From Neoconidiobolus thromboides FSU 785 (taxonomy: Eukaryota > Fungi > Entomophthoromycota), in the NCBI GenBank assembly GCA_025603075.1, contig MU626359.1:1-64000 (forward strand): DNA of 64,000 nt, written 5' to 3'. The notes under the pieces are model-generated. The model did not search any database. It was given only the letters and a program-made list of their open reading frames with translations, and was not told where the DNA came from. The position numbers and the translations under genes were made by a program. How positions within the stretch are numbered: position 1 is the stretch's first letter; each line of letters starts with the position of its first letter. Below, piece after piece: positions 936 through 63,748 of this stretch.

Positions 936-1041
936 ACATGGGGATGTTTTTTTTGATTCCATTACTTTTCCATTTTTTAAGCGCTATTTGAGTGGAAAAA
1001 TTATTAGTAAAATTCATAAACGAAAAAATACATCCTCACAT
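936..1041 (-). mobile_element. MITE copy 1 (98-bp GGGG/CCCC family)
   Basis: GGGGATGTTTTTTTTG...AATACATCCTC with family core AAGCGCTATTTGAGTGGAAAAA; flanked by direct repeat ACAT/ACAT. Confidence 0.85.
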
Positions 1042-4000
1042 GTAAATTGTGACATAGTAGTGTAAGCATTCATATTCCCTTTTACAGCAGGAGCTTTTAT
1101 CTCAACTAATAATACTCTAATGAGTAATGAATTCAAGCGTTGATTTAGTGCATCACTTAAAAGGAAAATAGGTGTGTAGATTAAATATCATAAGAGTACG
1201 AAACATTTTAATAAGAAAAATAGATATTATTAGAACATTGGAATTAAATTGGCCACTACTTGTATAGATCTTTGCCTAACAAATATTTATAGCTTAAACT
1301 AAACTGTTTTCACCCTTTTTTTCTGTTTTCTCTTTATTTGATTGAAATAATACAAATGTTTGTGACCGGGAACCTTTGGTATTATATATTATTAGTTTTC
1401 GCTTGTCTTTTTGATCCTTTGCAGATGATAATCCCTTTTTGTACATCAATTACAACTAGTTACTGATAAATCAAAATTTCTTTTCCTATTATAATACTGA
1501 TCATAGGCTGGCCTAGCTCTAGCTTGATTTATTCAATAATGGTTTACTCACCTTAATTATGGATGTTTAAAAAGTACTAGCTTGACTTTATATTTTTATG
1601 AAGTATGATTAATACTGTAGAAGGTCATGTAAATCCCTTAAATAGAAATCCAAATGCAGTTAATACAATATTAAAAAACATTAACTGTATTAGAGCAATC
1701 AATACGCATTAGTTTATACCCAAAACTCTTTTTTCAGTTTGATCTTTTACAAATCTATAATTTAAACAGTAAAATAATTGCTTTATTACTTAATTTAGAA
1801 ATAAGTTATGTAAATTTCGTAAATTTCGTAAATTTGAACCAATTAAAATGTTGATTTTTTTTAGTTTGGGCAAATTTTTAAACTCAACTATATAAAAACA
1901 AAGTAGAAAAGAGAAAAATAATTTTTTTGCGTATTGAAAATATTACATATTTAAATAACTTTCAGAAACTGATATCAGTTTCATTTTTTATAGACTTTAT
2001 AAAAAATCAAAATAAAGCAACATGAATCTAAACTGACACGCGTCAATTTACTTAAAGATTAATTTATTACTGAAATTTATCACTTCAATAACAGTATAAC
2101 AATTGAATGTGATCCATTTGCCGATTCAATTGTTTTTAATTAACCCCAGACAAAAATTGACTTTCACGGCCATAAACTCCTCATACTATTACTTAAGAAT
2201 TAGTAATCAACTACCTCATATCATATTTCATTCTTCAATTGGGACTAGGAATTTAATTCAAGTCGATTTTTATTGCAATAAAGTTAGATTGATAGAGATT
2301 GATAGAGTCAAGAGTTATAACATATTAATACTTTCAAAAAGATTAGTAATTGAGATAAGAAGTTTTTTTTTTGAAACTACCTGTGATAAAACCACGGCTA
2401 ATGGAATAGTTTTTACGGCTAAAAAATTTAATTCAACTAGTAATTTAATCTTGCTAAACTCTTAGGTCATAGAATAATTAATAATTCAAAATGACAGTCT
2501 GAATTTAAAGATGCTATTTTTATCAACAAAAATATGATAAAATACAATAAACATTGTATAACTTATAACAGTTATTAATCGAAAGTATAGAGATAGATTT
2601 TAAAAATAGAACACAGGCCATGCCCAGCATTTAAGTTATAAATTTTCATGGCGTTTCTTAACCTTTTAAAACTTCTAAATTATTCTGTCTAGGCTTAAGA
2701 TGGGTTAATAGGAAACTCACTAACTCATTGATTGGTCACGACTTACAGCTATTGCAGCTCTATTACGAATTAACTAGTAATTCTTTTAAGAATAATGTTT
2801 TACTAAAGCCTTGCTAAAAATTGAAGACTAGGCTTTAAAGAAGCTAAACGAATAAATAACTGGATTTAAAAATACCACAAATTAGGTCGCAAAAGAGCTG
2901 TAATTAATAAAAAGAATAGTCGAATATTCTTGAGATGCGGTCAAAATCAATTCCAGATTTATCAGGTGTTAGCTCGAGTCTAAGTGATAAGGTAAATATA
3001 TCGGACGTTTGGAAACTAAGTTTGGCTTCATTCATTGGATACAACACATTAGAAACAAACTACTAAAGAGCTGCTAACTAATTATTAATATACTATATAG
3101 CTGTGTAATACTCATTAATTTTGAATTAGAAAATGAACCAAACTTGAAATTCTTATGCGAAACTTTAATTACTAGATCTAAGTTTGGTAATTTCCAACTT
3201 TTCATAAACACTGTCGGTTTATTTGTTCCACATTTATTGCAGTTTATGTTACTATTTTGCAAGCGGATGATTTTTATCTCACTAATTAAGCTCTAGATTT
3301 AAGTTTTAATGTAACAGATTACCTCTTAATATTCACTCACTTCATATTAATCTGGGTCTAAATAAAACGAAGCTGTGGACTTTAAGGTGCTGTTATTAAT
3401 GTATCCCTGTTGTGTTACGTTTAATGTTCCTATCACAATGTCACAAGATAAATAAAGGTGATATAGGGAATTGCTTAATAATGCTTGCTAATGCCCAACT
3501 TTTCATTTTATTTTTCCATAAGCCTTTAGCCCGGAAAATTGCTATTAACTTTAGTTTACCCAAAGCTTGACATTGATTGCCCAAAAAATTTCATTTTAAG
3601 CCAATCAATTAAGAAGAAGTCAAATTAATAAATCAAATCTTATTAAAATTATTAGCTAATCAGTTCCAAATATACTTTTTAACCAATAAAATGCTTTTGA
3701 TGGCTTAAAGTTAAATCATTTTGAGACTTCTAAATGACCGAACTAATAAAATTGAAATGTGTAACTAAGCTCGGGTCAATTGAGGTTTACGGGTTATTTA
3801 AGAAGCCGATTTTTGGAAAAGTATTTACCAATTTTGAAACTTCGGTTAATAAGTGGTTGGTTTATTTAAAACCAAAAATAACTTGAACTTTCGAAATAGA
3901 AGGCGAAAGTAAATAATAAATGATTAAAATAATTGAGAATAAATATGAAGTAAAATTTTGTTTTTATTTACAAAATTAAAAGCTAGTCATTATACTAGAT

Positions 4001-4114
4001 CTATTACTCCTAATCTTGTAAATCTCAAGATAATAATTAGGATAAAGGAATAAATAAAGAACTGTTTTGTAGTAGAAGCTTATAAGCACGGCTTAAAAAG
4101 TTGAGAATATCAAA

Positions 4115-4684
4115 TTATTGTAATGGGTTGGCACTAAATTTTAAAGAGTAACGTGCAAGGTCATTGACCTCAAGAAGAAATATTGGGCTTTGGCGAGGGT
4201 TACGATATGATTGATCAAGCTGTGTATACCTATACTCATCTTGACCATAAATGTGTTCATGTTGAGGGGCAGTGTAATTTAGATGTGTTATTGGAGATGG
4301 AGCTGGTACTCTACTTGGACTAAAGTCACCATGTGGTTGTAAAAGCATGGTTGGTGATGAGGTAGATGTAATTAATGGAGTCGATTCCATAGCTATCCTT
4401 GGTCGAGTAGTAACTGAAGAGATATCTTCGGAAGTTGATTCTTCAACAGCTCTTTTCTTTTTGCGGCCTCGACATTTTGGTGGTTCTTCATATTGACATG
4501 TCAAATTACGTTTTGAGCATGCTTTACAAGAGGAGCCACCAGACACTGTTTCGCATCTTACTTTTCTTTTTCTACAATGATCACATGCTCTGTGACCGGA
4601 AGGGGAAAGAGTAATAGCTGAGGAACCCTCAGCATCGGTACATTGCTTTTTAGTTCTTTTTGAAGTGAAGTTGGTTTTAGCCAT
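4115..4684 (-). CDS. Zn(II)2Cys6 (GAL4-type) transcription factor, short, no obvious middle homology region
   Basis: ACDHCRKRKVRC-x8-CKACSKRNLTC six-Cys binuclear cluster followed by basic RGRKKKR; 189-aa ORF. Confidence 0.85.
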   Translation of the reverse strand: MAKTNFTSKRTKKQCTDAEGSSAITLSPSGHRACDHCRKRKVRCETVSGGSSCKACSKRNLTCQYEEPPKCRGRKKKRAVEESTSEDISSVTTRPRIAMESTPLITSTSSPTMLLQPHGDFSPSRVPAPSPITHLNYTAPQHEHIYGQDEYRYTQLDQSYRNPRQSPIFLLEVNDLARYSLKFSANPLQ

Positions 4685-7600: not shown

Positions 7601-8140
7601 AGAAAGATAAGATTGATTCTTTAGCATAAATCATGCCCATATATGGCATTTTTATACAAGATACAGGTGCCTTCTGCAAGAGATTTACAATCTTATAGCT
7701 AAATTTTACTCTTATTTAAATGTACTAAAGCCAAAAGTTTGTATAGCAATATATATTATAGAATTTACAAACGAATAAGGCTATCTATTATGATATCAGG
7801 GTAAGAAGGAAGTGGATTTTAACTATCAATAATTTTCTAAAGTGAATAGTTCTATCTATGCAAAACAAATTCTTTGACTGACAAAGGTTCTACGCAAAAA
7901 ATAGAACTAGAACATGAGGAACAAATATTTTATTGCATTATTAATTGATCAGTTAAAAATAAAATGTAAATTATTTTATTCGTAAAAATAATAGAAATTA
8001 TTGAATCAATTACATTCACTAATTATATTAATTTATTTTAATAAAATAAGATGTATTTTTATAAAATACCAGAGTTTAAAGTCAGTCAAATTTGTAAACA
8101 AAACATATGATAGCACAACAATTTTTATATTAATAATAAC

Positions 8141-9100: not shown

Positions 9101-9213
9101 ATATGGGGATGGATATGTATCTTTGTATTTAAGAATTTTATTAACAAATTTTCCGCTCAAATAGCGCTTAAAAAATGGAAAAAATAATGAAGTCAAAAAA
9201 AACACTCCCACAT
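9101..9213 (+). mobile_element. MITE copy 2
   Basis: ATAT-GGGGAT, short internal duplication, full core, ends AAAAAAACACTCCC. Confidence 0.85.
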
Positions 9214-9743: not shown

Positions 9744-9848
9744 ATATGGGGATGTTTTTTTGATTTTATTACCTTTCCCTTTTTTAAGTGCTATTTGGGT
9801 GGAAAGATTGTTAATAAAATTCTTAAACAAAAAAATACATCCCCATAT
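9744..9848 (-). mobile_element. MITE copy 3
   Basis: Both TIRs intact, ATAT/ATAT flanks. Confidence 0.9.
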
Positions 9849-10140
9849 TGACAATTCAATAGACTCATTAATTATAGAAATAGTCAAAATAATTTTGTCA
9901 TTTTATTAAATATTTTAAATAGTATATTAAAAACAAACATATAACTAATCGGTTATATTTGATTAATTGATATATGTAGAGTATTTGATGTATTTCTCTG
10001 ATGCAATGAATTATATGATATACAGACGACTATGTTTTCATAGATGTATATAATACAAGAGCGTTGAAGTTTATGGTTATAATATTTAGCAAAATCAATG
10101 AATTTTATTTTAATGATAATAACTATTACTCACTCGTTAT

Positions 10141-10796: not shown

Positions 10797-10899
10797 ATAT
10801 GGGGATGTATTTTTGCATTCAAGAATTTTACTAATTTTTCCACTCAAATAGCGCTTAAAAAGTGGAAAAAGTAATGAAGCCAAAAAAACATCCCCATAT
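10797..10899 (+). mobile_element. MITE copy 4
   Basis: Both TIRs intact, ATAT/ATAT; ~90 bp past the stop of the 10991-12271 gene. Confidence 0.9.
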
Positions 10900-10990: not shown

Positions 10991-12271
10991 TTATAAGAAA
11001 GAAAGTTGTACATCTCCGTGTTCGCTTTGAATACTAATTTCATTACCACTATTTTGATTTTCTCCGATATAGCCAGATTTAACTTTTTCTTCATCTTTTA
11101 ACATATGAATAGACTTCTCATTGCTTTTATAATTTAAATTAATTGATCCTTTATTATTAGTTATAAAGAAATTATTATCAAATAAAAAATTAAATTTCAA
11201 TAAAGTCTCTCCGTGACTATTTTTAGTCTGATAATTTAAATCTTTATCGTTTTGTTGAATATCGTTAACGTCTACTTCAATATAACCATGTGAGTTCTTT
11301 AATTGAGTTTTCTTAGTTTTACTTACATTTAACTTAATAGCCCCATGTTCACAATCCACTTTAATTTCATTTAATTTAGAATTGTTTATAATTACATCGC
11401 CGTGTGAATTTTCTGCCTCAACACTTGATAGTGTTGTATTATAGTATTCAATATTTCCATGTTGATTTTTTATTAAAGAAGAATCTATTTTACTCTCCTT
11501 TGTTATCAAATCACCATGAGAACCTTTACTGATGTTGTTTTTAATTGTAACTTTATGGAAAGAAGAATCCCCATGGTCAATGTTTAAAGTATTCGATTCA
11601 ATTTGAGTATCTCTTGCTTCCAAATCACCATGGTTAATATTAAGTTCTGCAGTTTTAATATTATTATTAATCAATTTAACATCTCCATGACTTACACTCA
11701 ATTTCAAATCATTTAAATTCAACTTACCATTAAAATTTAAATCTAAATTGGTTTGATATGTATTCATCCCTAAATAACTAAAAATATCTAAACTTTCAGG
11801 TATTTTAACTATCAAATCTGCTTTAAAACAATCATATCTATCAAAACCACTGACATTATCTCTTCCATCATTTATTGTAAATTTATAAGTGTTATCTTCG
11901 TTAACATAATAAGCTCTTAAAAGATTGATATCAAATTTCTCACTGACAAATAATTTTTTATCAATAATAATTAAATTGGAATCATGACGTTCAAATTTAA
12001 CACTACTATTACGAACATAACCGCCTAAGTTAATAGCTAATGATTTATAACTATTAGTGTCAAATTGGAATTCTTCTTTAATAGAAAATGGTTTTGTTGC
12101 TACACAATCATACATTCTATTGCTGCCAACCAAATTTAAACCAAATAAAATACCCATCAATACTCCTAATGTTACTAATATAATTACAGTACCAATTATA
12201 ATCGTCTTCTTCATTACCCTTGATTTTGCTTTTGGTTGATTACTCTCAACGATGTTACTTTTACTATTCAT
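10991..12271 (-). CDS. Membrane-anchored DUF4097-like (putative adhesin) beta-solenoid protein, His-ladder type, paralog 1
   Basis: 426-aa intronless ORF; basic N-terminus then one TM helix; 19-aa repeats with xHGD turns; co-linear with 12784-13950. Confidence 0.75.
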   Translation of the reverse strand: MNSKSNIVESNQPKAKSRVMKKTIIIGTVIILVTLGVLMGILFGLNLVGSNRMYDCVATKPFSIKEEFQFDTNSYKSLAINLGGYVRNSSVKFERHDSNLIIIDKKLFVSEKFDINLLRAYYVNEDNTYKFTINDGRDNVSGFDRYDCFKADLIVKIPESLDIFSYLGMNTYQTNLDLNFNGKLNLNDLKLSVSHGDVKLINNNIKTAELNINHGDLEARDTQIESNTLNIDHGDSSFHKVTIKNNISKGSHGDLITKESKIDSSLIKNQHGNIEYYNTTLSSVEAENSHGDVIINNSKLNEIKVDCEHGAIKLNVSKTKKTQLKNSHGYIEVDVNDIQQNDKDLNYQTKNSHGETLLKFNFLFDNNFFITNNKGSINLNYKSNEKSIHMLKDEEKVKSGYIGENQNSGNEISIQSEHGDVQLSFL

Positions 12272-12652: not shown

Positions 12653-12759
12653 ATATGGGAATGTTTTTTTTGGTTTTATCACTTTTTCCATCTTTTAAAC
12701 ATTGTTTGAGCAGAAAGATTGTTGATAAAATTCTTCAACAAAAAAATACATCTACATAT
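12653..12759 (-). mobile_element. MITE copy 5
   Basis: TIRs slightly diverged, ATAT/ATAT; 25 bp past the stop of the 12784-13950 gene. Confidence 0.85.
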
Positions 12760-12783: not shown

Positions 12784-13950
12784 CTATAAGAAAGAAAGCT
12801 GAGCATCCTCATTATCATTTTGAATCTTGATTTGATTGATACCATTTTGATCTTCTCCAATAGAACCAGATTTAGTTCCTTCTTCATCCTTTAATATGTG
12901 GATCAATTTTTTATTCCCTTTATAATTTAACTTGGCAGAGCCTTCATTGTTAGTTATGAAAAAATTATTATCAAATAAGGAAGTAAACTTCAATGCCGTA
13001 TCCCCATAGCTGTTTCTAATCTCATAGCTAACATCTTTAACATCTTGCTGAATATCATTAACTTCAATATTAATATCTCCATGGGAATTCTTTAATTGAA
13101 CTTTTTTAGTTCCACCCACGTTTAGTTTGATATCTCCATGTTCACAATCTATTTTAATTTCGTTTAATTTAGAATTACTTATAATTACATTGCCATGTGA
13201 GTTTTCTAATTTAATGTTTGAAAGAGTTGAATTAAAATATTTTATATCAGCAAGATGACTTTTGACTATAGAGGAATTAATCCTACTATCTTTAATTACT
13301 AAATCACCGTGACGGACTGTCAATTCACTCACTTTAACATTACTATTGATTATTTTGACATTTCCATGGATTACACTCAATTTTAGGTCATCTATATTCA
13401 ATTTACCATCAAAATCTAAATCTATATCGGTTCGATAAACATCCATCCTCAAATAACTAAAGATATTTAAACTTTTGGGTATTTTAACTGTTAAATCTGC
13501 ACGAAAACAATCATATTGGTTATGACCACTGGTATTTTCTCTTCCATCATTTATTGTAAACTTGTAACTTTTATCCTCATTGACATAATAAGCCTTCAGA
13601 GCATTAATATCAAATCGATCTCCAGCAAACAATTTTTTATCAATAACAATTAAATCGGAACTATGACGTTCAAATCTAATGCTACTATTCTGAACATAAC
13701 CTCCTAAATTTATATCTAATGAATCATAGGTATTAGGATCAAACTGAAACTCTTCTTTAATACCAAATGGTTTTGTTGCTATACAACGTAAAGTCCCACT
13801 CTCACTCATTATATTTAAACTGAATAAAATCACTAACACTATACTTAATAGTAATAACAAAATCCCAACAATAATTAAAATCATTTTCCTTGATATCTTT
13901 GGTTGTGGTTTTGACTTATTAGTTTCAAAAAAATCACTTTTATTATTCAT
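12784..13950 (-). CDS. Membrane-anchored DUF4097-like beta-solenoid protein, paralog 2 (tandem duplicate)
   Basis: 388-aa ORF aligning end to end with paralog 1 apart from a 38-aa (two-repeat) gap. Confidence 0.75.
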   Translation of the reverse strand: MNNKSDFFETNKSKPQPKISRKMILIIVGILLLLLSIVLVILFSLNIMSESGTLRCIATKPFGIKEEFQFDPNTYDSLDINLGGYVQNSSIRFERHSSDLIVIDKKLFAGDRFDINALKAYYVNEDKSYKFTINDGRENTSGHNQYDCFRADLTVKIPKSLNIFSYLRMDVYRTDIDLDFDGKLNIDDLKLSVIHGNVKIINSNVKVSELTVRHGDLVIKDSRINSSIVKSHLADIKYFNSTLSNIKLENSHGNVIISNSKLNEIKIDCEHGDIKLNVGGTKKVQLKNSHGDINIEVNDIQQDVKDVSYEIRNSYGDTALKFTSLFDNNFFITNNEGSAKLNYKGNKKLIHILKDEEGTKSGSIGEDQNGINQIKIQNDNEDAQLSFL

Positions 13951-14737
13951 TTTATTATTATTTTGAATTATCTCTATTATTTTGAAGCATTATCGTTCAG
14001 TATTTATAGTCAATTTTGACATAATGATGATGGAGAGCAATTACCCGGACAGTCATTGTGTTTTTAAGAGTTTGTATTTATACTATCAAGAACTTATATT
14101 CTTATTAGAGAGTTATTCATAATAGTAAGTACTTTTATTTACAATTATAGATATTTTATTTCAAAATGGTGATAAAATGCTTAAAGTCATTAAAATTTGA
14201 TTCATAATTATAAATTGTTCATGATATATCAAATTGTTAAAGAAGTGTGGCGATTTATCTAATGAATTATAGTATTTATAATATTAATACTAATATTGAA
14301 TATATATTTTTATTAGTTATCATTATTTAATAACATTTTTAGTCTTATAATTAGTTTGGTAATTTTATTTTTATTACTTTTATTGTTAAAAATATCAGAA
14401 ATCATAAAATTGTTATTAAGAATGGTCAATAAAGGCTTCTTAAAATGTTATAATTTTTAAAAGTTTAAGAATAATTTGATAGAGTCATTTTAAAGGAACG
14501 GCATACATTTTAATTTTGATTTTAATTTTGATTTTTAAAATAAGATTTTGTATCAATAAAATTTTATTGTATGCTTCTAAAATACTAATAATATTACAAT
14601 ATGTGCAAGAATATAACATTATAAGTTATTAAATACTCTTTAAAATTATTTATTTTATAATATCCTTAGTTTCTAAAAAGATGGTAGAATAATTATATTC
14701 AGTATAAATAGACTAGATATTAATATAATGCTTGAAA

Positions 14738-14822
14738 TATAAGAATTTTATTAGCAATTTTTCCACTCAAATAGTGCTTGAAAGATGGAAAAAATAATGA
14801 AGCCAAAAAAACATCCCCATAT
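14738..14822 (+). mobile_element. MITE copy 6, left end missing
   Basis: Core and right TIR (ACATCCCC-ATAT) present, left TIR absent. Confidence 0.8.
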
Positions 14823-16180: not shown

Positions 16181-17102
16181 TATTGATAAAAGTTGAACAA
16201 GGGTTTAAATTGAAATATCATTCTATATATACTTGTTGGGTTTTTTTCTAGAAGCTAGAGCATATTATTGATCATCTATAATAGGTTAACATAATTTAAG
16301 CCATCATTACATTCAATTTTATGCTGTTTACTTTTTCCATATGTTTGATAAGCCTAAAAGTCCTCAATTTCAATTTAAAGGCTTACCTTATTTAGTTTCC
16401 AAGATCTAAATTTAAGCCAATTATTAATTTTAAAGGTTTGCCAAGTCTTTGGAGTTTTAATTATTTTACTCCAGAATTATTTGTTTAAAATCCTTTTTAT
16501 CTATTATTACTCCTTAATATAATCGATGATATGTTTTTGATTAATTGATTTTTAGGTATTTAATGTATTTGTTTAGTTTTCTTGTTTCGATGGCTAATGT
16601 AGGCTTTTTTTAATTAATGTAGTTTATTTTCACACTCTTAATTATACAACATTTAAATATCAGTTTTAGGTTGAGGAAATGGATAAACAATTCCCCATAA
16701 TAGTAAAGATAAAAAAAGCAGTAATAGTCATACTATGTTTTAATATATATTATACCTTTAGATACAAAAGCGTTCGTAGTTTTAAGACATATCTTATAAG
16801 TTTAAACCATACAATTTAACTTGTATAAGATAATATTATGTATTACTAATACTAACATCAATACTGTGATATGAATAACTATCAGTTAAAATACGTTTAA
16901 ATAGGATAAACAATAAGTCTTACAATTTAAATTATTACTATTGTTCTTATATAATCGATGGATCTTATTAATATTTTAAACATTGAATAATACCATTTAC
17001 TATAATATATATATTATAATAAACCCATATGCTTTTTAAAAGAATCAAAAAATGACATGTTGTTATGAATATTAGAATATTATACTATCTCAAAAATTAA
17101 AT

Positions 17103-17208
17103 ATATGGGGATCTATTTCTGTATTTAAGAATTTTACTAACAATTTTTCCACTCAAATAGCACTTAAAAGATGGAAAAAGTAATGAAGTCAAAAAAACAT
17201 CCCCATAT
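17103..17208 (+). mobile_element. MITE copy 7
   Basis: Both TIRs, ATAT/ATAT. Confidence 0.9.
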
Positions 17209-18114
17209 ATGTTATTACTACCAACTATACTCTTTTTATAAAAAATGTTCAGACCCTTTGACAAACAACAAAAATTGATGAATTTTGTAACTTAGTTAAA
17301 CTATCCCCAAACAAATAATCTGCTGTAAACGCATTGTTTTAATCCAATCACCATAAATCAATTCTATTTTATGCAGTTTCTAACCCTAAAATAAATGTTA
17401 AAATCCGAACTCTAGATAATATTAGTTCTAGAATACACAGTTTTAAGTTTATGTGTCAGGATACGTTCTAAAACCATTATTATTTAAGGCCATTGACCTT
17501 AGCCTATGTTGAAATCCATGCTATGCTTAAAAACCAACTTTATTCTTGCTTTTTACATCCTTCCTACCTTGATAAAATACTAATGAATTTATTGTTAAAA
17601 TAAATTGTTTAAATAATGATAATTTTACTAAACTTTCAATTGGAAATTTTGATATAGTATAAATAATGTTGAGAAAATAAGAATATAAGAAAAAAATCCA
17701 GTTCCCAATAATCAGTTGCTGCAATAGTAGTACATCTAACTCTAAATCAATTTTATTTGATGATAATCTATATTATTAATCTTATATGAAAGTAATGAAC
17801 TGTATTATAATTAAGAAGCTACAGTTTATTTTTACTAAAGCTAATAAAAATTATTATTAAGTCAAAAAAACAAACTTGAACTGGTCAAAAGTAGTAGTTA
17901 TTGGGATATTTCAGTATGATGTTGCATAGAATTTTATGTATCTGACCCATCGAAATCCCTCTTTTAGTCTAATTAAATATATCACTTACACTAATTACGT
18001 GAAAAATTACATTCATTAATCTATGTGATAAAATTTCCCTATCAATAATAATAGCTATAAATATAATTAATGAAGCGAAAGTATAAGAAAAAACGATTTC
18101 TAAAAAGGGAATTT

Positions 18115-18186
18115 GGCTAGCTGGCGCAATGGTAGCGCGTTGGACTCCAGATCTAGAGGTTAGAGGTTCGACTCCTCTGCTGGTCA
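18115..18186 (+). tRNA. tRNA-Trp(CCA): tRNA-Trp (CCA), copy 1
   Basis: 72-nt cloverleaf: GGCTAGC/GCTGGTC acceptor, CT-CCA-GA loop, GGTTCGACTCC T-arm, T5 terminator 3 nt downstream. Confidence 0.95.
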
Positions 18187-18298
18187 ACTTTTTATATATT
18201 CTAAATCGTTTTATGTATGTTAAATTTGAATGATTAACTAAAAATTGATGCTTAGCCTCTATCACTTACAAGATATCAAAAATGGAAAAAGATTAACC

Positions 18299-24116: not shown

Positions 24117-24222
24117 ATATGGGGGTATATTTTTGTATTTAAGAATTTTACTAATGATTTTTCCACTCAAATAACACTCAAAAAATGAAGAAGTAATAAA
24201 GCCAAAAAAAACATCCCCATAT
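24117..24222 (+). mobile_element. MITE copy 8
   Basis: Both TIRs, ATAT/ATAT. Confidence 0.9.
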
Positions 24223-24486: not shown

Positions 24487-24591
24487 ATATGGGGATGTTT
24501 TTTTGATTTCATTGTTTTTCCATTTTTTAAGCGCTATTTGAGTAGAAAGATTGTTAGTAAAATTCCCAAACACAAAAAAACATTCCTATAT
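24487..24591 (-). mobile_element. MITE copy 9
   Basis: Left TIR intact, right diverged (CATTCCT), ATAT flanks. Confidence 0.85.
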
Positions 24592-29252: not shown

Positions 29253-29574
29253 GCTTTTTACAATAGTAATAAAGATAACAAAACAATTTTTTACACTGAA
29301 AATAAACTATTACTTTCATTTATACTTTTCAATTTAAATATCAAGTATTTCAATATAGTCAAAAGTAATATTCTACATGTCAACATTAATATTCTTTTAA
29401 TGAAAATCTTTTCATTGTAAACTTAATTTTATTTTTAGCTTTTCGATACTCAAAAATAATGATTAAACGATCTCCCCTATCAACTAAAGATAATTAAATC
29501 ATTTTTAAACTAATATATTTTTGTATTTTTAACATGTAAATTTATAATAAAAATAATCTCTAAAAAAGAAGCCT

Positions 29575-29646
29575 GGCTAGCTGGCGCAATGGTAGCGCGT
29601 TGGACTCCAGATCTAGAGGTTAGAGGTTCGACTCCTCTGCTGGTCA
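29575..29646 (+). tRNA. tRNA-Trp(CCA): tRNA-Trp (CCA), copy 2
   Basis: Identical to 18115-18186; T6 terminator. Confidence 0.95.
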
Positions 29647-29765
29647 ACTTTTTTGAAGTAAATATATATGTTCTTTTTCTTTTTTATTAAATTTAAATGA
29701 GTAAGCAAATTAGAAATCGATGCTTATCTTCCATTATTTCAAGGTATTAAACCGAAAAAAACAGT

Positions 29766-29867
29766 ATTTGAGAATGTATCTTTTTATTTAAGGATTTTAT
29801 TAACAGTTTTTCCACTCAAATAGCGATTAGAAATAGAAGAAGTGATGAAACTAAAGACATCCCTGTT
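29766..29867 (+). mobile_element. MITE copy 10, degenerate
   Basis: Core TTTTTCCACTCAAATAGCG retained, ends eroded. Confidence 0.7.
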
Positions 29868-29902: not shown

Positions 29903-30006
29903 ATAAGGAGTGTTTTTTGGCTTCATTGCTTTTTCCACCTTTTAAACACTATTTGAGTAGAAAAATTGTTAGTAAAATCCTTAAATGTAGAGAAACATCC
30001 CCATAT
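29903..30006 (-). mobile_element. MITE copy 11
   Basis: Core plus ACATCCCC-ATAT end. Confidence 0.8.
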
Positions 30007-33167: not shown

Positions 33168-33257
33168 ATATGGGAGTGTTTTTTTTGACTTCATTATTTT
33201 TTCCATTTTTAAGCGCTATTTAAGCGGAAAATTTTTTAGTATAATTTTATAAAAAAC
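33168..33257 (-). mobile_element. MITE copy 12a, one end missing
   Basis: ATAT-GGGAGTGTTTTTTTTG and core, runs directly into copy 12b. Confidence 0.8.
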
Positions 33258-33292
33258 AAATGGGGATGTATTTTTGTGTTTAAGAGTTTAAC
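33258..33292 (+). mobile_element. MITE copy 12b, left-end fragment
   Basis: GGGGATGTATTTTTGTGTTTAAGAGTTTAAC then similarity stops. Confidence 0.75.
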
Positions 33293-36281: not shown

Positions 36282-36388
36282 ATATGGGGATGTTTTTTTT
36301 GATTTCGTTACTTTTTCCATCTTTCAAGTGCTGTCTAAAGGGAAAGATTGTTGGTAAAATTCTTGAACACAAAAATACATCCCCATAT
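36282..36388 (-). mobile_element. MITE copy 13
   Basis: Both TIRs intact, ATAT/ATAT. Confidence 0.9.
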
Positions 36389-39503: not shown

Positions 39504-39608
39504 ATATGGGTATGTATTTTTGTATTTGAGGATTTTACTAACAATTTTTCCACTCAAATAGCGTTTAAAAGATGGAAAAAATAATGAAGCCAAAAAACAT
39601 CACCATAT
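39504..39608 (+). mobile_element. MITE copy 14
   Basis: Both TIRs, ATAT/ATAT. Confidence 0.9.
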
Positions 39609-39631: not shown

Positions 39632-39737
39632 ATATGGGAGTGTTTTTTTTGACTCCATTATTTTTCCATTTTTTAAGTACTATTTAAAGCGAAAATTTGT
39701 TAGCAAAATTCTTAAACACAAAAATACATCCCCATAT
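39632..39737 (-). mobile_element. MITE copy 15
   Basis: Both TIRs, ATAT/ATAT; 23 bp from copy 14, inverted. Confidence 0.9.
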
Positions 39738-39913: not shown

Positions 39914-40554
39914 TTATCGATATCTTAGGCACAAGCAACTAAAAATGGGCGTAGCACCCGTTTTTGAAGCATCAAGAGCTTTAATACAGAACATGTTATA
40001 TTCAGCTCGTAGTTTATACTTGTCGTGATAGTCAGTATTACAAAAGTTTGTGTATATGCTGATGACTTTAAAGTAGTGTTTGTGGTAATCGGTAGTAGGT
40101 TTGCACTCTTTAAAATTTAAATCGAAGTACATTTCACTGGAAATAGGTTCACTTGCAATATTATCTCCAAAGCTTCTGATACCGTTACTATTGGTATTTC
40201 GTTGAATCAGCTCAAGTTCCTCTATTTATTCCTTAAACCTACTGAAAACTAGCTTCTCTTCAATACTAATACACATGTTTTACTATTGATCTATGATAGA
40301 AAAGGCTATAGTAAGAGTCACTGCAGGTCTTAAGAATACCAGATAAGTCATCTTTACTTCTAGCTTGAGATATATATTATTTGAATCAACGATTATTAGC
40401 AAATGGTTGGCCGTCACAGTTATGTAAAATGATCTTTTAAAAAGATGCATAGCTTTATCATCAATAGGTCTTAAACTATGATGGCTAAAGGGGAATACTG
40501 TAATAGTGTAAGTTAAGAAAACTAAGAAGTAAACACAATATCATTAAATTTCCT
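39914..40554 (-). pseudogene. Small secreted protein family member A (pseudogene)
   Basis: FPFSHHSLRPIDDK, DGQPFANNR*FK*YISQARSKDDLSGILKTCSDSYY and KECKPTTDY align with 61249-61818; AGG in place of the start codon, stops and frameshifts. Confidence 0.8.
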
Positions 40555-40645: not shown

Positions 40646-40747
40646 ATATGGGGATGTATTTTTTTGTTTAAGAATTTTACTAACCTTTCCACTCAAATAA
40701 CGCTTAAAAATAGAAAAGTAATGAAGCCAAAAAAAACATCCTCATAT
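40646..40747 (+). mobile_element. MITE copy 16
   Basis: GGGGATGT...CATCCTC, ATAT/ATAT; 92 bp upstream of member A. Confidence 0.9.
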
Positions 40748-44195: not shown

Positions 44196-44228
<33 letters not shown>

Positions 44229-48398: not shown

Positions 48399-48503
48399 AT
48401 GTTGAGATGTATTTTTATATCTAAGAATTTTACCAACAATTTTTCCGCTTAAATAGCGCTTAAAAAATGGAAAAAATAATGAAGTCAAAAAACACTTCCA
48501 TAT
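48399..48503 (+). mobile_element. MITE copy 17
   Basis: Full core, diverged ends. Confidence 0.85.
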
Positions 48504-48679: not shown

Positions 48680-48780
48680 ATATAGGGGCGTTTTTTTGGG
48701 TTCATCACTTTTTCCATCTTTTGAGCGCTATTTAAGCAGAAAAATTGTTAGTAAAATTAAACAAAAATACATTCTCTTAT
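48680..48780 (-). mobile_element. MITE copy 18
   Basis: Full core, diverged ends. Confidence 0.8.
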
Positions 48781-54901: not shown

Positions 54902-55005
54902 ATATGAGGATGTTTTTTCTGGTTTCATTACTTTTTCCATCTTTTAGACGCTATTTGAGTGGAAAAATTGGTAGTAAAATTCTTAAAAAAAATACATCCC
55001 CATAT
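54902..55005 (-). mobile_element. MITE copy 19
   Basis: GAGGATGT...ACATCCCC, ATAT/ATAT. Confidence 0.9.
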
Positions 55006-55863: not shown

Positions 55864-55970
55864 ATATGGGAGTGTTTTTTTTGATTTCATTATTTTTTCC
55901 ATTTTTAAAGCACTATTTGAGTGGAAAGATTGTTAGTAAAATTCTTAAACACAAAAAAACACCCCCATAT
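55864..55970 (-). mobile_element. MITE copy 20
   Basis: GGGAGTGT...ACACCCCC, ATAT/ATAT. Confidence 0.9.
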
Positions 55971-56165
55971 GCTAAGTTTAAACTTATTAAAAAAGACTAT
56001 GATAAGTATACTCATTAAATATATCGAAGTAACTAACGTAAGTCTTAGCTGAAAAATACACTTGGATTTAAAATAAATACAGCTAAACCATTTTAAATTG
56101 TTATAATTAATTGAACTATAATATTTGAGTTTGCTATCCATAAGGTAACTATATATTAAGGGGCC

Positions 56166-56271
56166 ATATGGCGATACATTTTTGTGTTTAAATATTTATT
56201 AACAATTTTTCTGCTCAAATAATACTTAAAAGATGGAAAAAACAATGAAGCCAAAAAAAACAGCCTTATAT
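56166..56271 (+). mobile_element. MITE copy 21 (empty sites at 61181 and 62910)
   Basis: Inserted in ggggcc-ATAT-tttt of member B promoter; ATAT on both sides. Confidence 0.9.
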
Positions 56272-56318
56272 TTTTAAAATCATATAAGATAAAAATCATC
56301 TAATGTTATTAACTGAAA

Positions 56319-56883
56319 ACGAACTTTAATACTGTTGCTTCTCCTTTTTCATTTTGATTATCTTTTATTGCTCTAGAATTTCCTTTTAATTACATGTACT
56401 GAGGGTATTAATGATAAAATCATCAGTAACTTTAAAGGATTGTTACATACATGTAATGCCTAACTGATTGCCGATGATTGCCAACTTGAATGAAAAATGT
56501 TTCGAGATAGAAATAAAAAAGATATAGCTGACATTATTGAGTACTATAATAACTCATACTATGGCCTTTCTTTTAAGGCCCGATACCCAAATAGATAATT
56601 TAATAGTGAGCAGGTGCTAGTTTTCAGTAGTTTTAAGGAGACACTAGACGAATTGGCCCTATTAGTTAAAATAGCGAGGACGATAGCGTCAGAAGCAAAA
56701 GCGTCAATGATAAAGGCGATATTTCAAATTGACTTATTGCTATTACAACCAACTTTGAACAGATTTAAGGAGTGCAAAACAAAGTTGAATTTGAAAAGTC
56801 TCAAGGCGGAATCAATAAAGTATCTGGAGAGTTCGCGAAAGGAAATAGAAAAATTTATTGTAGATCATATCCTAGATATTTGA
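56319..56883 (+). pseudogene. Small secreted protein family member B (pseudogene)
   Basis: ACG in place of start; GINDKIISNFKGLLHTCNA*LIADDCQLE*KM, LVFSSFKETLDEL, RFKECKT align with 61249-61818. Confidence 0.8.
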
Positions 56884-57822: not shown

Positions 57823-58390
57823 ATGAGATTTGACAATTTTGCCTCTACTTTTTTGATTTCTTTAACTTTTATTGTTGCTACCCTCCCTCCTAATGATCAT
57901 GGCTTAAAGCCCATTGGTGATAAAATTCTTAATATCGTCGAAGTATTTTTATTTGTCCAGGATGGCCAAAAAATTGCTGATAACTGCCAGCCTAAACGAA
58001 GTATTTCACAAGTTCAGAGTATATATGAATTTAATTCCATCTTTGATGCCTACGGGGAATCTCACCTCAATGTTTTATATCAAAATCCAGTCAGAATCAA
58101 CGAATTTGATACTTAATGACATTAAATCATAGAGGTAATCAAATTGGCCCAAGATCAATTTGCTATTCATAGAGAAAGAATAAAAAAATAGCCTTTAAAA
58201 GTGAATCTATTGGTACCGAAATAAGCCTCGGTCAAATATTCAAAGGGTGTGTATCTTCCAAAGAATATCATGTAATCTGTGTTCAGCTTGTAGATATATC
58301 CAAATGTTCTTGGGATAGAGGTAAACTCAATATAAGAAAATTACGCTCTAAATTTGATATAACCAAAAAGAAGCTTTTGATATTATAAAA
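57823..58390 (+). pseudogene. Small secreted protein family member C (truncated at 58116, decayed 3' half)
   Basis: MRFDNF...DHGLKPIGDK...DGQKIADNCQPKRSISQV aligns with intact member; stops after ~97 codons; KGCVSSKEY downstream. Confidence 0.7.
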
Positions 58391-59096
58391 AGGTCTGAAA
58401 GTATTGATTTTTAATTACTTGTGCTTAAAATGACTTATGAAGTTGCTCTAAAGATCATTTAAAGTGTCTTTCGAGTTAATTAAACAATATTATATAGTTA
58501 GTTTCAATTGTAATATTATGACTTTAGATACATAAATATTTATATTGATTTAAGGTTAGATAGCGTAGTCTGAGGTAATTTCATTTAATTAATAGTAAAA
58601 ATTTCATTTATTTGTAAGACTTTTTACTAAGGTAAAAATTCAAAAAATAATAAGTATAGCCATTGAAACTTATGCTGATAGTACATTTGTATATATATTT
58701 CAGTGTTTAAATGTGTAAGTTAAGTTAAACTTACATTGTTTTCATATATAAGTTAGGTAATTTGAGTTAAACAAATGGAAATGTTTTTTATTAATTGTCT
58801 TTTTTGCTATTTTTTTAAATTAGAAATTAATTAGCCATTATATTGTTTAAGTTTCGATATGTGCTAAATAACTGTTCATTTTAATAGAAATTAAATTAAT
58901 AGCCTTGAAATCACTAGATTGAACAAGCAACTATAAATTCATCACTTGTCAGCACAAACTTGAACTTAAGCATCTGCCTTAATTAATTTTTGAAAAAATA
59001 GTAAAAAAGGGTAAAATAAAAAACATTCCCAAATACCAAGCAAACTTTAATGGTATTTCTATCTTAATAAAACTCATAGCTTTAATTCTTTAAACT

Positions 59097-59195
59097 GTAT
59101 AATGTGTTTTTGAATTTATTAAGAATTTTTCTGCTCAAATAGCACTTAAAAGATGAGAAAAGTGATAAAGCCAAAAAAATTATCTCTGTACATAT
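59097..59195 (+). mobile_element. MITE copy 22, degenerate
   Basis: Core TTTTTCTGCTCAAATAGCACTTAAAAGATG retained, ends eroded. Confidence 0.7.
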
Positions 59196-59268
59196 TATAT
59201 TAAATGTCACTATTTTTTGTTTTTATAATAACTTAGCGTATCAATTAAAGTATACTACATAAAGTATA

Positions 59269-59370
59269 ATATGGGGTGTATTTTTTGGTTTCATTACTTT
59301 TTACATTTTTTAATCGCTACCTGAGCAGAAAAATTCTTAATAAAATTAAACAAAAAATACATCCTCATAT
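59269..59370 (-). mobile_element. MITE copy 23
   Basis: GGGGTGT...CATCCTC, ATAT/ATAT. Confidence 0.85.
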
Positions 59371-59526
59371 AGTGTAATTTTAGTTAATATCATTTGAGTT
59401 GTTATAATAAAATTAAAAGCTGCAAACCATTTTATCAAAGAATGTAAAGCAGATAGAATTAAAATTGATTCAAGTAATTATAGTAAGTAGAGTATGCGTT
59501 TTAAGTTTCCTGTAAGTGGGGTAATC

Positions 59527-59632
59527 ATATGGGGATGTATTTTTGTATTTAAGAATTTTACTGACAATTTTTCCACATAAATAGCGCTTAAAAAATGGAA
59601 AAATAATGAAACTAAAAAAAACAGCTCCATAT
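59527..59632 (+). mobile_element. MITE copy 24 (empty site at 56151)
   Basis: Inserted in ggtaatc-ATAT-attgagg of member D promoter. Confidence 0.9.
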
Positions 59633-59708
59633 ATTGAGGAGTAATATTTGTAGAAAAATACATAGCAAAAATTTACTACTTTAAGATGTTTAACTATATC
59701 AATCAAAG

Positions 59709-60362
59709 ATGAAGTTTAATGCTTTTATTTGGCTTTTACTACTGAAGCATCCAGATCTAAATATCATGGTTTAAGAACTATTGGTGATGAAGTTATCGAA
59801 AGTTTTAAGAGATTATTGTATATCCATGATGATCAATTAACTACCGGTAACTGTTAAATTGAATAAAAGAATGTACAAGCTGGAAAAAGAGAGGAATTCG
59901 ATATTATCTTTCGAGCTTGTGATCAGACTTTTAATGATCTTTTAAATCTAAATCAACTTAATATAAATGAATTTAATATTAAGCTACAGAAAACTCAATG
60001 CAGAATTAAAATAGCTCGAGCAATTCACTGCTACCAATGGAGCTACCAATGGATATAAGAATATGATAAATAATGGAGGAAATAACAATAGTAATATCGG
60101 AAACGGGTATGCTGCCAGCAAACTCAACTTAGAATAAAGTTGAAAAGACTGCAAATCTTGCGTTGGTTGTAATGGATTCCTCACTAGAGCCTTCAGAATA
60201 TTTAGATTGAAGTTAAATTATTACTCTCATAGAGAACAACGATTAACCATTGAGGTTGTATATATCTTAAGAATTAAAAATGTTAGGTGTGACCTTAAAC
60301 TTGTTCCTTCCTTAGCTACTTGTACGAAAGAAGCTATAAAAAGCTATTCTAAATATCGTTAA
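59709..60362 (+). pseudogene. Small secreted protein family member D (pseudogene)
   Basis: MKFN..., frameshift, YHGLRTIGDEVIESFKRLLYIHDDQLTTGNC*IE*K, RACDQTF, KDCKS. Confidence 0.75.
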
Positions 60363-60669
60363 ATTATTTTTTAATATAACTTTTCAGAATAGATCCAAAG
60401 AAAGTAAATTTCACTAAATATTTAATGATATTTTAAATTTCAATTTGATGATTTTACGTGCAAATAAGAATATTAATATAATATTTAATTAATATAGCTT
60501 AATTTAACATAAAGTTCTCAAAGGCGATAGTTCTATCCATCCTTACGATATTTCATCAATAATAAAACTCTAAAGCAATCGACACAGATATAAAAATCAA
60601 TGCTAATATGCATGTTTTCTAAAAAATTTGTAATTGTTAAATGTTTAAATTAAGCTAATTATTTTCAGT

Positions 60670-60775
60670 ATATAAAGCTATTTTTTTTGGTTTCATACTT
60701 TTTCCATTTTTTGAGCGTTATTTAGGCGGAAAAATTGTTAATAAAATTGCTAAGCAAAAATATATTCCCACTTAT
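60670..60775 (-). mobile_element. MITE copy 25, degenerate
   Basis: Core recognisable, TIRs eroded. Confidence 0.7.
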
Positions 60776-61152
60776 TGTATATTTATAATAAATATTACAA
60801 GCAATAAAAGCCAGTTATAATTTTAAAAAAATAAAAGAAAAATAAGAACCTGTTTTTTTCCACTCATTTCCTTAAATATCTTCAATAAAGGCAAGCTGTG
60901 CATACGCTATAATATTGAGTCTATATTATTTATGTAATATTATTTATTCGCTATTTTTATTCAACTAGGTGGTCATATTATGTAAATATATTTGTTAAGC
61001 TTAGAATATAAAAAATACAAGTATACTCGCGGAATATGCCTAAGTAGATAAAGTGCTCCTTATTGGAAGTGGATTCCCTCAGTTAAAATAAATAAAGCTA
61101 ACCTAAAATTAAATCAACCCAATTAATTCAAGTATTATTTTTAGTTTGCCGT

Positions 61153-61189
61153 CCACGGAATAATTATGTATTAAGGGGCCATATTTTTT
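61153..61189 (+). promoter_or_regulatory. Conserved proximal promoter block of the secreted family (member E)
   Basis: CCACGGAATAATTATGTATTAAGGGGCCATATTTTT, matched upstream of F (62882-62917) and recognisable upstream of A, B, D. Confidence 0.6.
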
Positions 61190-61248
61190 AAAGTATATAA
61201 GACAAAATTGTATCGATTAAAGACATCATTGAACTTCACCAAACAAAA

Positions 61249-61818
61249 ATGAAATTTAGTACTACTACTTTTACTTCTTTAATTTGCTTAACTTCCTCTG
61301 CTGCAGCATTTTCTTTTAATCACCATAGCTTAAGAGGTATTAGTGACGAAATCATTGGTGGCTTTAAGGGATTATTGCATATCCGTGATGTCCAGCCAAT
61401 TGCCAATGATTGTCAATTTGAGCAAAAAATGTCCCAAGTTAAAAATAAAGAAGATTTTATTAACACTATTAAGTACTGCGACAACTCTTACTATGATCTT
61501 TTGTATGAAGGTAAATACTCAAGTAAGGAACTTAATAGTGAACGGGAACAGCTTTTCAATAAATTTAAGGTAGCCTTAGAGAAACTCGATCCTAATCAAA
61601 AGAACAATGAAATTACTTTTGAAGATGGGCCTATTAATTACGTATTAGACCTTAATAAAAGATATAAAGAATGTAAATCTCCCACTGATTATCGTGGACT
61701 CTACAATGAAGTCAAAGATACATATGATCGCCTTAGAGAAAATCGTTATGTTGATCAGAGCCGATTACAAGTTGAATACGCAGACATCAAAAACAAATTT
61801 TCTAGTGTTCTAAATTAG
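61249..61818 (+). CDS. Small secreted protein family member E (only intact copy), unknown function
   Basis: 189-aa ORF, signal peptide MKFSTTTFTSLICLTSSAAA, three mature-region Cys, helical-looking charged sequence; five broken paralogs in window. Confidence 0.85.
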   Translation: MKFSTTTFTSLICLTSSAAAFSFNHHSLRGISDEIIGGFKGLLHIRDVQPIANDCQFEQKMSQVKNKEDFINTIKYCDNSYYDLLYEGKYSSKELNSEREQLFNKFKVALEKLDPNQKNNEITFEDGPINYVLDLNKRYKECKSPTDYRGLYNEVKDTYDRLRENRYVDQSRLQVEYADIKNKFSSVLN

Positions 61819-62378
61819 ACTTTTAATATTGGGTTTTAACTGCTCGCCTTTAAAATGGCTTATAAAGATACTTTAAGGATTATTTAGTTTATTCCTAAAT
61901 TATTATAATAAATATAGTTACAACTTTATTATATGTCCAATAGTTTATTTACGCTTTTACTTTGCAGCTTTAATTATATAAATGTACTTTTGATATTCAG
62001 ACAAACAATATAGCTTAACTTTGGATAATGTATTCAATGGTAAGTTTTGTGTATTTGCCCTCTCCTTTTATTAAAAAATAAATCTTTGGATAGCAATAAG
62101 TATAAATGTAGAAGTTCATGCTAATAATTATATTATTTATACTTGATATCTAATGTTTGTTTACTAAATAGTATATACATTTTGAGTTAAAACACTTACT
62201 GTTTCTTATAACAACTTAGGCTATATTAATTACAATACATCTATATTTAATATAATAGCAGTATTTTAATTGATATTGATTGATCTACTATAAAGAATCA
62301 AAACACAAAAGTCATTTTACCAGTGAGTGTAGGCCAAATATAACTAAACCATTCCTGCTAACTACAATCAATTAAACT

Positions 62379-62477
62379 ACATGGAAATGTTTTTTTAGTT
62401 TCATCGCTTTTTCATTTTTAAAGTTCTATTGAATGAAAAAGACAGTAAATCTTTGAACGAAAAAGGCATCTTTATGT
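62379..62477 (-). mobile_element. MITE copy 26, strongly degenerate
   Basis: GGAAATGTTTTTTTAG start and eroded core. Confidence 0.6.
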
Positions 62478-62700
62478 GCTATAATATTGAGTTTAAATTA
62501 CTATAAAATCTTATCTGTTTATGTTTTTCGACTTAATTCATTATAATTTTAACTACTTGAATTATAAAATTTTTTATCAAAACATACTTTTTGTTTAGTT
62601 ATATTATATTGGACGATTGTATTTATCAAATTTAGACTTAAATAAAAAAGATGTACTCATAGAACATACTCAAGTAGATAAAATACCTTTTGTCAGAAGT

Positions 62701-62804
62701 ATATGGGAATGTATTTTTTATTTAAGAATTCTACCAACAACCTTTCCACTCAAATTAGCGCTTAAAAATGGAAAAGTAATGGAATAAAGAAAACATCGCC
62801 ATAT
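62701..62804 (+). mobile_element. MITE copy 27
   Basis: GGGAATGT...ACATCGCC, ATAT/ATAT; 157 bp upstream of member F. Confidence 0.85.
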
Positions 62805-62881
62805 CCTTGTAGTTTGAACAAATAAAGCTAAACTAAAACTAAATCCATGGAATTGATTTGAGTTCATATTTCGTTTTCCTT

Positions 62882-62917
62882 CCACGGAGTAATTATGTAT
62901 TAATAAGCCATATTTTT
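62882..62917 (+). promoter_or_regulatory. Conserved proximal promoter block (member F)
   Basis: CCACGGAGTAATTATGTATTAATAAGCCATATTTTT. Confidence 0.55.
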
Positions 62918-62960
62918 AAAGACATGTAAGATAAAAATTATTGAACTTTATTAAATAAAA

Positions 62961-63305
62961 ATGAAATGTATTACTATTACTTTTACTAGTATAGCGTCTC
63001 CTTTTAACTACCTTGGTTTAAGGGCTATTGGTGATTTTAAAGGATTATTACATATTCACGAGAGCTAGTCAACTGCTGATGATTATCAATTTGGGTAAAA
63101 AATGTCTCAAGCCAAGCTAAAGATAAAGAGAATTTTATTAAGATTATTAAATATTGTGACAACTTATTCTATGATCTTTTGTATGATGGTAAATATTCAA
63201 GCAAGGAACTTAATAGTGGATGGAGGCTGGTTTCCAGTAGATTCAAGGAAGCATTAGACGAACTTACTCCTAATTAAAAAAATAATAGTGTTGTTTTTTG
63301 AAAAT
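62961..63305 (+). pseudogene. Small secreted protein family member F (pseudogene, closest to E)
   Basis: MKCITITFTS...FKGLLHIHES*STADDYQFG*KMSQA...KYCDNLFYDLLYDGKYSSKELNS; deletions, stops, frameshift, 3' loss. Confidence 0.85.
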
Positions 63306-63430
63306 GTAACTGCAGGTTTAATGGGATTTCCATGATAGTTTAAAGTAGTATCATTACGATAAAAATTTATTTAAATTATATCGCTAATTTTTGTATATCA
63401 ATTTTATTTGAAATATTATAGCATAGTAAA

Positions 63431-63537
63431 ATGTGAAGATGTATTTTTGTGTTTAAGAATTTTACTAACAAATTTTCCACTTAAATAGCGCTTGAAAAAT
63501 GAAAACAATAATGAAACTAAAAAAAACACTCCCATGT
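63431..63537 (+). mobile_element. MITE copy 28
   Basis: Full core; flanked by direct repeat ATGT/ATGT. Confidence 0.85.
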
Positions 63538-63553
63538 AATACTTAATTAAAGC

Positions 63554-63661
63554 ATATGAGGGTGTATTTTTGTGTTTTTGAATTTTACTAATAATTTTTC
63601 CGCTCCAAATAGCGTTTAAAAGATGGAAAAAAAGTGATGAAGCTAAAAAACACCCCCATAT
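63554..63661 (+). mobile_element. MITE copy 29
   Basis: GAGGGTGT...ACACCCCC, ATAT/ATAT. Confidence 0.9.
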
Positions 63662-63720
63662 GTAAATACATTTTTGAGTTTAAGAGCTCTACATAAGGTA
63701 CATTTAATACCATTTAAATT

Positions 63721-63748
63721 GACAAAAAAAACAAAGACATCCCCATAT
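63721..63748 (+). mobile_element. MITE copy 30, right-end fragment
   Basis: CAAAAAAAACAAAGACATCCCC-ATAT only. Confidence 0.6.

Follow-up and report, generated by a model that had tools for sequence, protein, structure and literature searches.

Sola2 DNA transposons were reportedly described by Bao et al. in 2009. Elements of this group carry terminal inverted repeats (TIRs) of 12–21 bp and are bordered by target site duplications of 4 bp that are AT-rich and of the form AWWT, that is ATAT, AAAT or ATTT (Bao & Jurka 2013, PMC3627910). In the end alignments of the same study (Additional file 11), the termini read GAGC...GCTC and are followed by AAAT. A second point of comparison is given by the Stowaway-type miniature inverted-repeat transposable elements, or MITEs, along with the fungal mimp elements, which are mobilised by Tc1/mariner. 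Here we describe a 98–99-bp repeat in a window of 64,000 nt from the fungus Neoconidiobolus thromboides FSU 785 (assembly GCA_025603075.1, contig MU626359.1 of 77,841 bp, positions 1 to 64,000 of the forward strand). This repeat is almost certainly a MITE of some cut-and-paste family. Taken as a whole, it is very likely best explained as what internal deletion has left of a cut-and-paste transposon, with no coding capacity, and the superfamily, as judged from its target site and ends, is probably Sola2.

The assignment to Sola2 is favoured because a 4-bp, AT-rich, palindromic target that is probably duplicated as a whole and short TIRs beginning with G fit the published elements. Sola2 and its non-autonomous derivatives (DFa-1/-3 and the PPa families, dictyostelids; PMC3627910) use what is probably the same kind of target, ATAT included, and have similarly short TIRs (14–16 bp in the MITE). 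The DFa elements share G-initial termini with the MITE (GGGG/GAGG...CCCC here), which is a weak criterion, and the dictyostelid elements likewise inhabit an AT-rich genome. The MITE differs from Sola2 in that its termini have no sequence similarity to the published ones past the first bases, its target is almost exclusively ATAT plus ATGT rather than AWWT, and its host is a fungus, for which there is one record (PMC5751038). It is also a 98-bp element present in thousands of copies, whereas the described Sola2 elements are kilobase-sized. With Stowaway-type MITEs and mimp it shares size (~100–250 bp in those elements), fold-back, AT-rich intergenic sites and a central TA. However, those elements duplicate only TA and have another TIR consensus, whereas a strict tetranucleotide recurs on both sides here, with a TG centre in two copies.

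Copies were identified with a profile that was iterated in nhmmer from the seed copy at 59531–59628 until convergence, within the 64-kb window. The profile retrieved 29 copies, with E values from 3.6e-9 to 2.4e-23. Adding by eye a variant at 63662–63744 and a fragment at 33262–33290 brings the number of pieces to 31. Together they occupy 2,932 bp, a share of 4.6%, in agreement with the ~31 copies and roughly 5% claimed by an earlier note on this DNA. A 20-mer from the 5’ end had 16 matches at up to 3 mismatches (0.03 expected from shuffles), and the 12-mer ATATGGGGATGT had 43 (4.6 expected). The copies are 94–102 bp long and non-coding, well within the size of a MITE (below ~800 bp). Their identity to the 99-nt consensus ranges from 61.6% to 91.9% (mean 84%), and their pairwise identity averages 74%. 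The consensus given by the earlier note differs from ours at 2–3 positions, and its statement that the repeat is among the shortest of transposon derivatives was overstated, as MITEs of 80–100 bp are common.

Both strands are occupied, as had been claimed, with 15 copies in plus and 14 in minus orientation, as expected for random orientation, and the local density is 0.48 copies per kb. The claim that the repeat never lies inside coding sequence was also borne out: none of the copies overlaps an open reading frame (ORF) of at least 100 aa. With 32% of the window taken up by such ORFs, the probability of this is 5.6e-6 under random placement and 6.7e-4 when ATAT sites alone are counted. According to the public gene calls for the contig, all copies are intergenic. 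Two further copies lie just past the end of the window on the same contig.

With their flanks, the copies read ATAT-GGGGATGT...ACATCCCC-ATAT or, in a longer reading of the ends, ATAT-GGGGATGTWTTTTT...AAAAAWACATCCCC-ATAT. The TIR, GGGGATGT(A/T)TTTTT, is imperfect and about 14–16 bp long, close to the ~15 bp noted earlier, and GGGGATGTWTTTTT and AAAAAWACATCCCC are complementary at 13 of 14 positions in the consensus. The flanking tetranucleotide is the same on the left and on the right in 20 of the 29 copies (18 ATAT and 2 ATGT), against ~1% expected by chance. The four positions of ATAT are conserved on the left in 27, 25, 24 and 27 of 29 copies, with similar values on the right, and column conservation collapses one base beyond ATAT on both sides. 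No direct repeats of 3–8 bp were found outside ATAT in the flanks of the 29 copies. The two ATGT/ATGT pairs, at copies 940–1037 and 63435–63533, are very unlikely to be parallel mutations, because the A>G rate is only 6% per site. We conclude that the flanking tetranucleotide (if not all of it, then its centre) stems from duplication of the target and does not belong to the element. Specification at all four positions, together with the recurrence of the target on either side, speaks for a duplication of 4 bp.

An insertion could be compared with empty counterparts in a family of 6–7 paralogous small genes (~190 aa, signal-peptide-like N-terminus, no Pfam domain, 30–62% mutual identity), whose promoters were aligned. 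The promoter of the paralog at 56.4 kb reads AAGGGGCC-ATAT-MITE (56170–56267)-ATAT-TTTTAAAA, the insertion lying ~65–70 bp upstream of the start codon. The sister promoter is empty and reads AAGGGGCC-ATAT-TTTTTTAAAG, with its ATAT at 61181–61184, and a second empty promoter reads AATAAGCC-ATAT-TTTTAAAGAC, with its ATAT at 62910–62913. At the junctions, the filled site GGGGCC-ATAT-MITE-ATAT-TTTT (56158–56275) stands against GGGGCC-ATAT-TTTT (61173–61190) and AAGCC-ATAT-TTTT (62902–62917), and the difference between filled and empty is exactly the MITE plus one additional ATAT. One filled site and two empty paralogous sites therefore document an insertion with target duplication. As a mechanism, we propose that a transposase encoded elsewhere in the genome would recognise the 14–16-bp TIRs (GGGGATGTWTTTTT) and excise the MITE, which would then insert at palindromic ATAT, rarely at ATGT; staggered cuts and repair would leave the target tetranucleotide on both sides.

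The copies and sites along the window are as follows, with E values from nhmmer, identity to the consensus, and presence in three other isolates (X2, X3 and X4) where contigs reach the copy:

940–1037, minus strand: MITE copy with ATGT/ATGT flanks (E 2.5e-23; 91.9%)
9111–9209, plus: MITE copy of subfamily AAT...ACACTCCC (E 4.3e-23; 87.9%; in X2–X4)
9748–9844, minus: MITE copy, ATAT/ATAT (E 4.4e-20; 88.9%; in X2–X4)
10801–10895, plus: MITE copy, ATAT/ATAT, best fold-back (E 2.3e-22; 90.9%; DNA fold −20.9 kcal/mol, z −5.4; in X2–X4)
12657–12755, minus: MITE copy, ATAT/ATAT (E 4.8e-21; 82.8%; in X3 and X4)
14721–14818, plus: MITE copy, 5’ end eroded (E 9.4e-19, model positions 17–95; 77.8%; in X4)
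17107–17204, plus: MITE copy, ATAT/ATAT (E 3e-23; 91.9%)
24121–24218, plus: MITE copy, ATAT/ATAT (E 1.1e-18; 86.9%)
24491–24587, minus: MITE copy, ATAT/ATAT (E 4.8e-22; 87.9%)
29770–29867, plus: MITE copy, 3’ end eroded (E 1.4e-16; 75.8%)
29904–30002, minus: MITE copy (E 3.4e-22; 79.8%)
33172–33261, minus: MITE copy lacking its last 8 bp (E 8.1e-16, model positions 7–95; sequence read)
33262–33290, plus: 29-bp 5’ fragment of a second copy, adjoining 33172–33261 (20-mer search and by eye)
36286–36384, minus: MITE copy, ATAT/ATAT (E 1e-22; 86.9%)
39508–39604, plus: MITE copy, ATAT/ATAT (E 2.5e-23; 88.9%)
39636–39733, minus: MITE copy, ATAT/ATAT, subfamily ACACTCCC (E 1e-19; 84.8%)
40650–40743, plus: MITE copy, ATAT/ATAT (E 4.9e-19; 88.9%)
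48403–48499, plus: MITE copy (E 8.8e-23; 83.8%)
48684–48776, minus: MITE copy (E 1.1e-20; 80.8%)
54906–55001, minus: MITE copy, ATAT/ATAT (E 7e-22; 90.9%)
55868–55966, minus: MITE copy, ATAT/ATAT (E 2.4e-23; 90.9%)
56166–56271, plus: filled site, ATAT + MITE (56170–56267) + ATAT (E 1.4e-18; paralog alignment)
59091–59187, plus: eroded MITE copy (E 1.2e-15; 73.7%; in X4)
59273–59366, minus: MITE copy, ATAT/ATAT (E 3e-18; 80.8%; in X4)
59531–59628, plus: MITE copy, ATAT/ATAT, profile seed (E 3.1e-21; 90.9%; contig depth 119,000–207,000 vs 20–46 for single-copy DNA)
60674–60771, minus: eroded MITE copy (E 3.2e-17; 78.8%)
61181–61184, no strand: empty paralogous site with one ATAT, sister promoter (paralog alignment)
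62383–62473, minus: most diverged MITE copy, within a spliced, highly expressed transcript (E 3.6e-9; 61.6%; RNA contig 62200–62482, X4 contig 60681–62738)
62705–62800, plus: MITE copy, ATAT/ATAT (E 2.7e-15; 78.8%)
62910–62913, no strand: second empty paralogous site with one ATAT (paralog alignment)
63435–63533, plus: MITE copy with ATGT/ATGT flanks (E 2.9e-22; 88.9%)
63558–63659, plus: MITE copy, ATAT/ATAT (E 1e-21; 81.4%; sequence read)
63662–63744, plus: 83-bp variant with MITE termini of ~25 bp each and an unrelated core (by eye and 12-mer matches)
39998–40525, 56404–56850, 57823–58113, 59672–60016, 61249–61818 and 62961–63298: small secreted-protein-like paralogs

To estimate abundance beyond the window, we used the DNA data sets of isolates X2–X4, which have 80–90% of 31-mers in common with the window, corresponding to well under 1% divergence. 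Their contigs were aligned over 57900–63850 at a likeness of at least 85%. Between 7,300 and 9,900 contigs per isolate run piled up on this region, and the summed depth in the three isolates was 119,000–207,000 over the MITE against 20–46 over unique DNA. The earlier note had made its proposal of a genome-wide MITE depend on the repeat occurring elsewhere in the genome, which it does, at thousands of times the single-copy depth in all three isolates. These values indicate a copy number on the order of 10^3–10^4 per genome, which agrees with the local density in the window.

At 97% likeness, the five copies located between 9.1 and 14.8 kb are entered from unique flanking DNA by contigs of all three isolates, and others span the copies at 59.1, 59.3 and 62.4 kb. 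No empty allele was found among the ~8 assessable copies in the three isolates (two alignments, 12 kb, 14 copies); every assessable copy is fixed in the three other isolates. Linked diagnostic sites define at least two subfamilies, AGT...ACATCCCC (10 copies) and AAT...ACACTCCC (5 copies), the pattern expected from successive source elements. The identification as a MITE held on each structural count: size without an ORF, TIRs, target duplication, filled and empty sites, subfamilies and thousands of copies.

The family is old, since copies diverge by 8–38% from the consensus. This range, together with the presence of the assessable copies in three isolates, is consistent with the earlier description of nearly intact to eroded copies and a long history of activity. 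Decay consists mostly of transitions, with GC-to-AT changes at 15–25% per site whatever the dinucleotide context and AT-to-GC changes at 6%, a bias of 3:1 across the whole element. A signature of repeat-induced point mutation or CpG methylation was considered and rejected, as there is no CpG or CpA context effect. We attribute the bias to a genome-wide pressure towards AT, and the decaying copies serve as a neutral gauge of the mutation bias that underlies the genome's 26% G+C. The family appears to have died out, or almost died out, in the window, because no copy exceeds 92% identity to the consensus and none is polymorphic among isolates.

Several observations weigh against the Sola2 assignment or the picture of a mobile element. 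The superfamily was read here from the target signature, with a transposase that is putative, and no Pfam model exists for Sola (PMC5751038). ATAT is a palindromic dinucleotide repeat, so that a 4-bp duplication of ATAT (GGGG...CCCC) and a 2-bp duplication of TA (TGGGG...CCCCA) read alike at every filled, empty and tandem site. The target is narrower than AWWT, with AAAT and ATTT almost absent, and ATGT (2 copies) falls outside this motif. Among fungi, Sola2 is a great rarity: a large survey of cut-and-paste elements recorded it once, in Aspergillus flavus (PMC5751038). Finally, no polymorphic copy was found among the ~8 assessable ones, and the window therefore offers neither an allelic empty site nor a sign of recent movement.

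The alternative that fares best is a Stowaway-like MITE of the Tc1/mariner/pogo group, in which the element would extend from TGGGGATGT to ACATCCCCA, TA would be duplicated, and the outer A and T would be a flanking preference. TA-flanked MITEs are the commonest kind. In the window, TA forms the centre of most sites, and the letters of each one would also allow a TA duplication. Tc1/mariner elements are moreover common in related genera, making up 12–14% of the Entomophthora and Entomophaga genomes (PMC11105155). However, the outer flank positions are conserved as strongly as A/T positions inside the element (27/29 and 28/29; ~93%), and 2 of 29 copies duplicate a TG centre (ATGT/ATGT). Known flanking preferences of Tc1/mariner are far weaker than this conservation and, to our knowledge, its integration duplicates a strict TA, with TG almost never allowed. 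We consider this alternative unlikely.

Other superfamilies that duplicate 4 bp (piggyBac, Kolobok, Ginger or Academ), or an unclassified transposase, are also conceivable as the source of the MITE, its superfamily having been assigned here from the target signature. Yet piggyBac and Kolobok duplicate TTAA rather than ATAT, and we regard this reading as very unlikely. ATAT is explicitly among the duplications of Sola2 (PMC3627910), which remains the probable superfamily.

Fold-back of the MITE was examined in relation to a possible function. DNA fold z-scores of single copies are uneven, from −5.4 in the best copy (10801–10895) to between −0.2 and −2.1 in others. RNAalifold found no consensus structure in 24 copies, and Rfam had no match at MITE positions, the only hits at gathering score in the window being three tRNAs. 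In the specified internal hairpin, 84.2% of cells are paired against 84.4% in shuffled alignments, with covariation scores of 0.127 and 0.130. Because pairing and covariation equal those of shuffles and no alifold structure emerges, we conclude that the fold-back is inherited from a palindromic ancestor and is not kept by selection. A functional role for the repeat as a dispersed non-coding element, be it a gene for a structured RNA, a precursor of small RNAs, or a cis-regulatory or insulator module of the host, with conservation through selection on its hairpin rather than through recent shared descent from a transposon, is highly improbable: the long hairpin of some copies, their location in promoters and 3’ flanks and their presence in RNA contigs would suit it, whereas the Rfam, RNAalifold and covariation results, the random orientation (15:14), the neutral GC-to-AT decay over the whole element and the transposition signature of a target duplication against a paralogous empty site do not.

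We also searched for the MITE outside N. thromboides. In Entomophthora muscae and Massospora cicadina, 37 kb of sequence surrounding the ortholog of the poly(A)-binding protein (PABP) gene contained no match to the MITE profile even with the E cutoff raised to 10, though this is too small a sample to speak of absence. A metagenome scan for the terminus ATATGGGGATGTATTTTTG yielded six chance matches, on contigs of 38–50% GC in which the profile found no MITE. No description of the family was found in the searchable literature, Dfam and Repbase lying outside this search. The reported repeat content of N. thromboides is 13.5%, in a comparative paper on Entomophthorales that does not contain the words “MITE” or “Sola” (PMC11105155). 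At the density of the window (4.6%), the MITE would represent a substantial share of this content.

If the Sola2 assignment is true, the MITE would be a rare fungal record of the group, and its thousands of insertions would provide a natural data set on Sola2 target choice. A bolder idea is that MITE termini, mostly in promoters and 3’ flanks, may have been co-opted as genome-wide binding sites for putative catalytically dead proteins derived from Tc1/IS630 and pogo. The transposon and domesticated transposases would then have supplied the parts of a regulatory or silencing network of the host, which we hold to be a long shot. In a weaker version of this idea, the family would be the first documented case of Sola2 having expanded on a large scale in a fungus, with ~10^3–10^4 copies and roughly a third of the genome's repeat content. 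Otherwise, the MITE is ordinary transposon biology. Short-read assemblies of the isolates break at every copy, and since the MITE also occurs in promoters and untranslated regions, it should be masked and considered in gene annotation.

Some copies show additional arrangements. At 33172–33290, a copy lacking its terminal ACATCCCC stands head to head with the first 29 bp of another, which has the appearance of a deletion that took place between neighbouring insertions, or else of an abortive event. The variant at 63662–63744 and the preceding copy (63558–63659) have one ATAT in common. Copies 9748–9844 (minus) and 17107–17204 (plus) are also alike in ~85 bp of 5’ flank (9842–9927 vs 17027–17109), with 77% identity over 194 bp. 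One explanation would be a longer form of the element, another would be insertion into some other repeat of low copy number. MITE pairs were also considered as composite units, a reading rejected because the spacers of those at 29.8 kb and 39.5 kb show no convincing homology.

The most diverged copy (62383–62473) lies in a transcribed region. RNA contigs over 60889–62482, with a depth of ~3,300, cover the gene at 61249–61818 and extend to 62482. They reveal a 50-bp intron at 62150–62199, whose CT..AC ends on the plus strand imply splicing on the minus strand. This suggests an antisense or overlapping transcript at 60889–62482 that contains the diverged MITE.

Two tandem DUF4097 (“toastrack”) paralogs, at 10991–12271 and 12784–13950, share ~74% DNA identity. 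Each is followed, within 100 bp downstream of the stop codon, by a MITE that was inserted independently, one in plus (10801–10895) and the other in minus orientation (12657–12755). Used as the query of a protein search, the DUF4097 gene retrieved no proteins other than the two of the window. Two tRNA-Trp(CCA) genes, at 18114–18188 and 29574–29648, have equal Rfam scores and ~200 bp of flank at 78% identity (18089–18280 vs 29549–29751), and the second is directly followed by a MITE pair.

The window has a G+C content of 25–31%. It encodes PABP, a Nipped-B cohesin loader, zinc fingers of the C2H2 type and a GH17 glucanase, which are typical nuclear proteins of a eukaryote. The intronless PABP resembles most closely its counterparts in E. 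muscae (65%) and M. cicadina (59%), and the evidence of the window places the DNA in the Entomophthorales. A 542-aa ORF at 36797–38425 has no Pfam match and contains internal DNA repeats with a period of ~210 bp, up to 92% identical, in a region with strong GC and AT skews.

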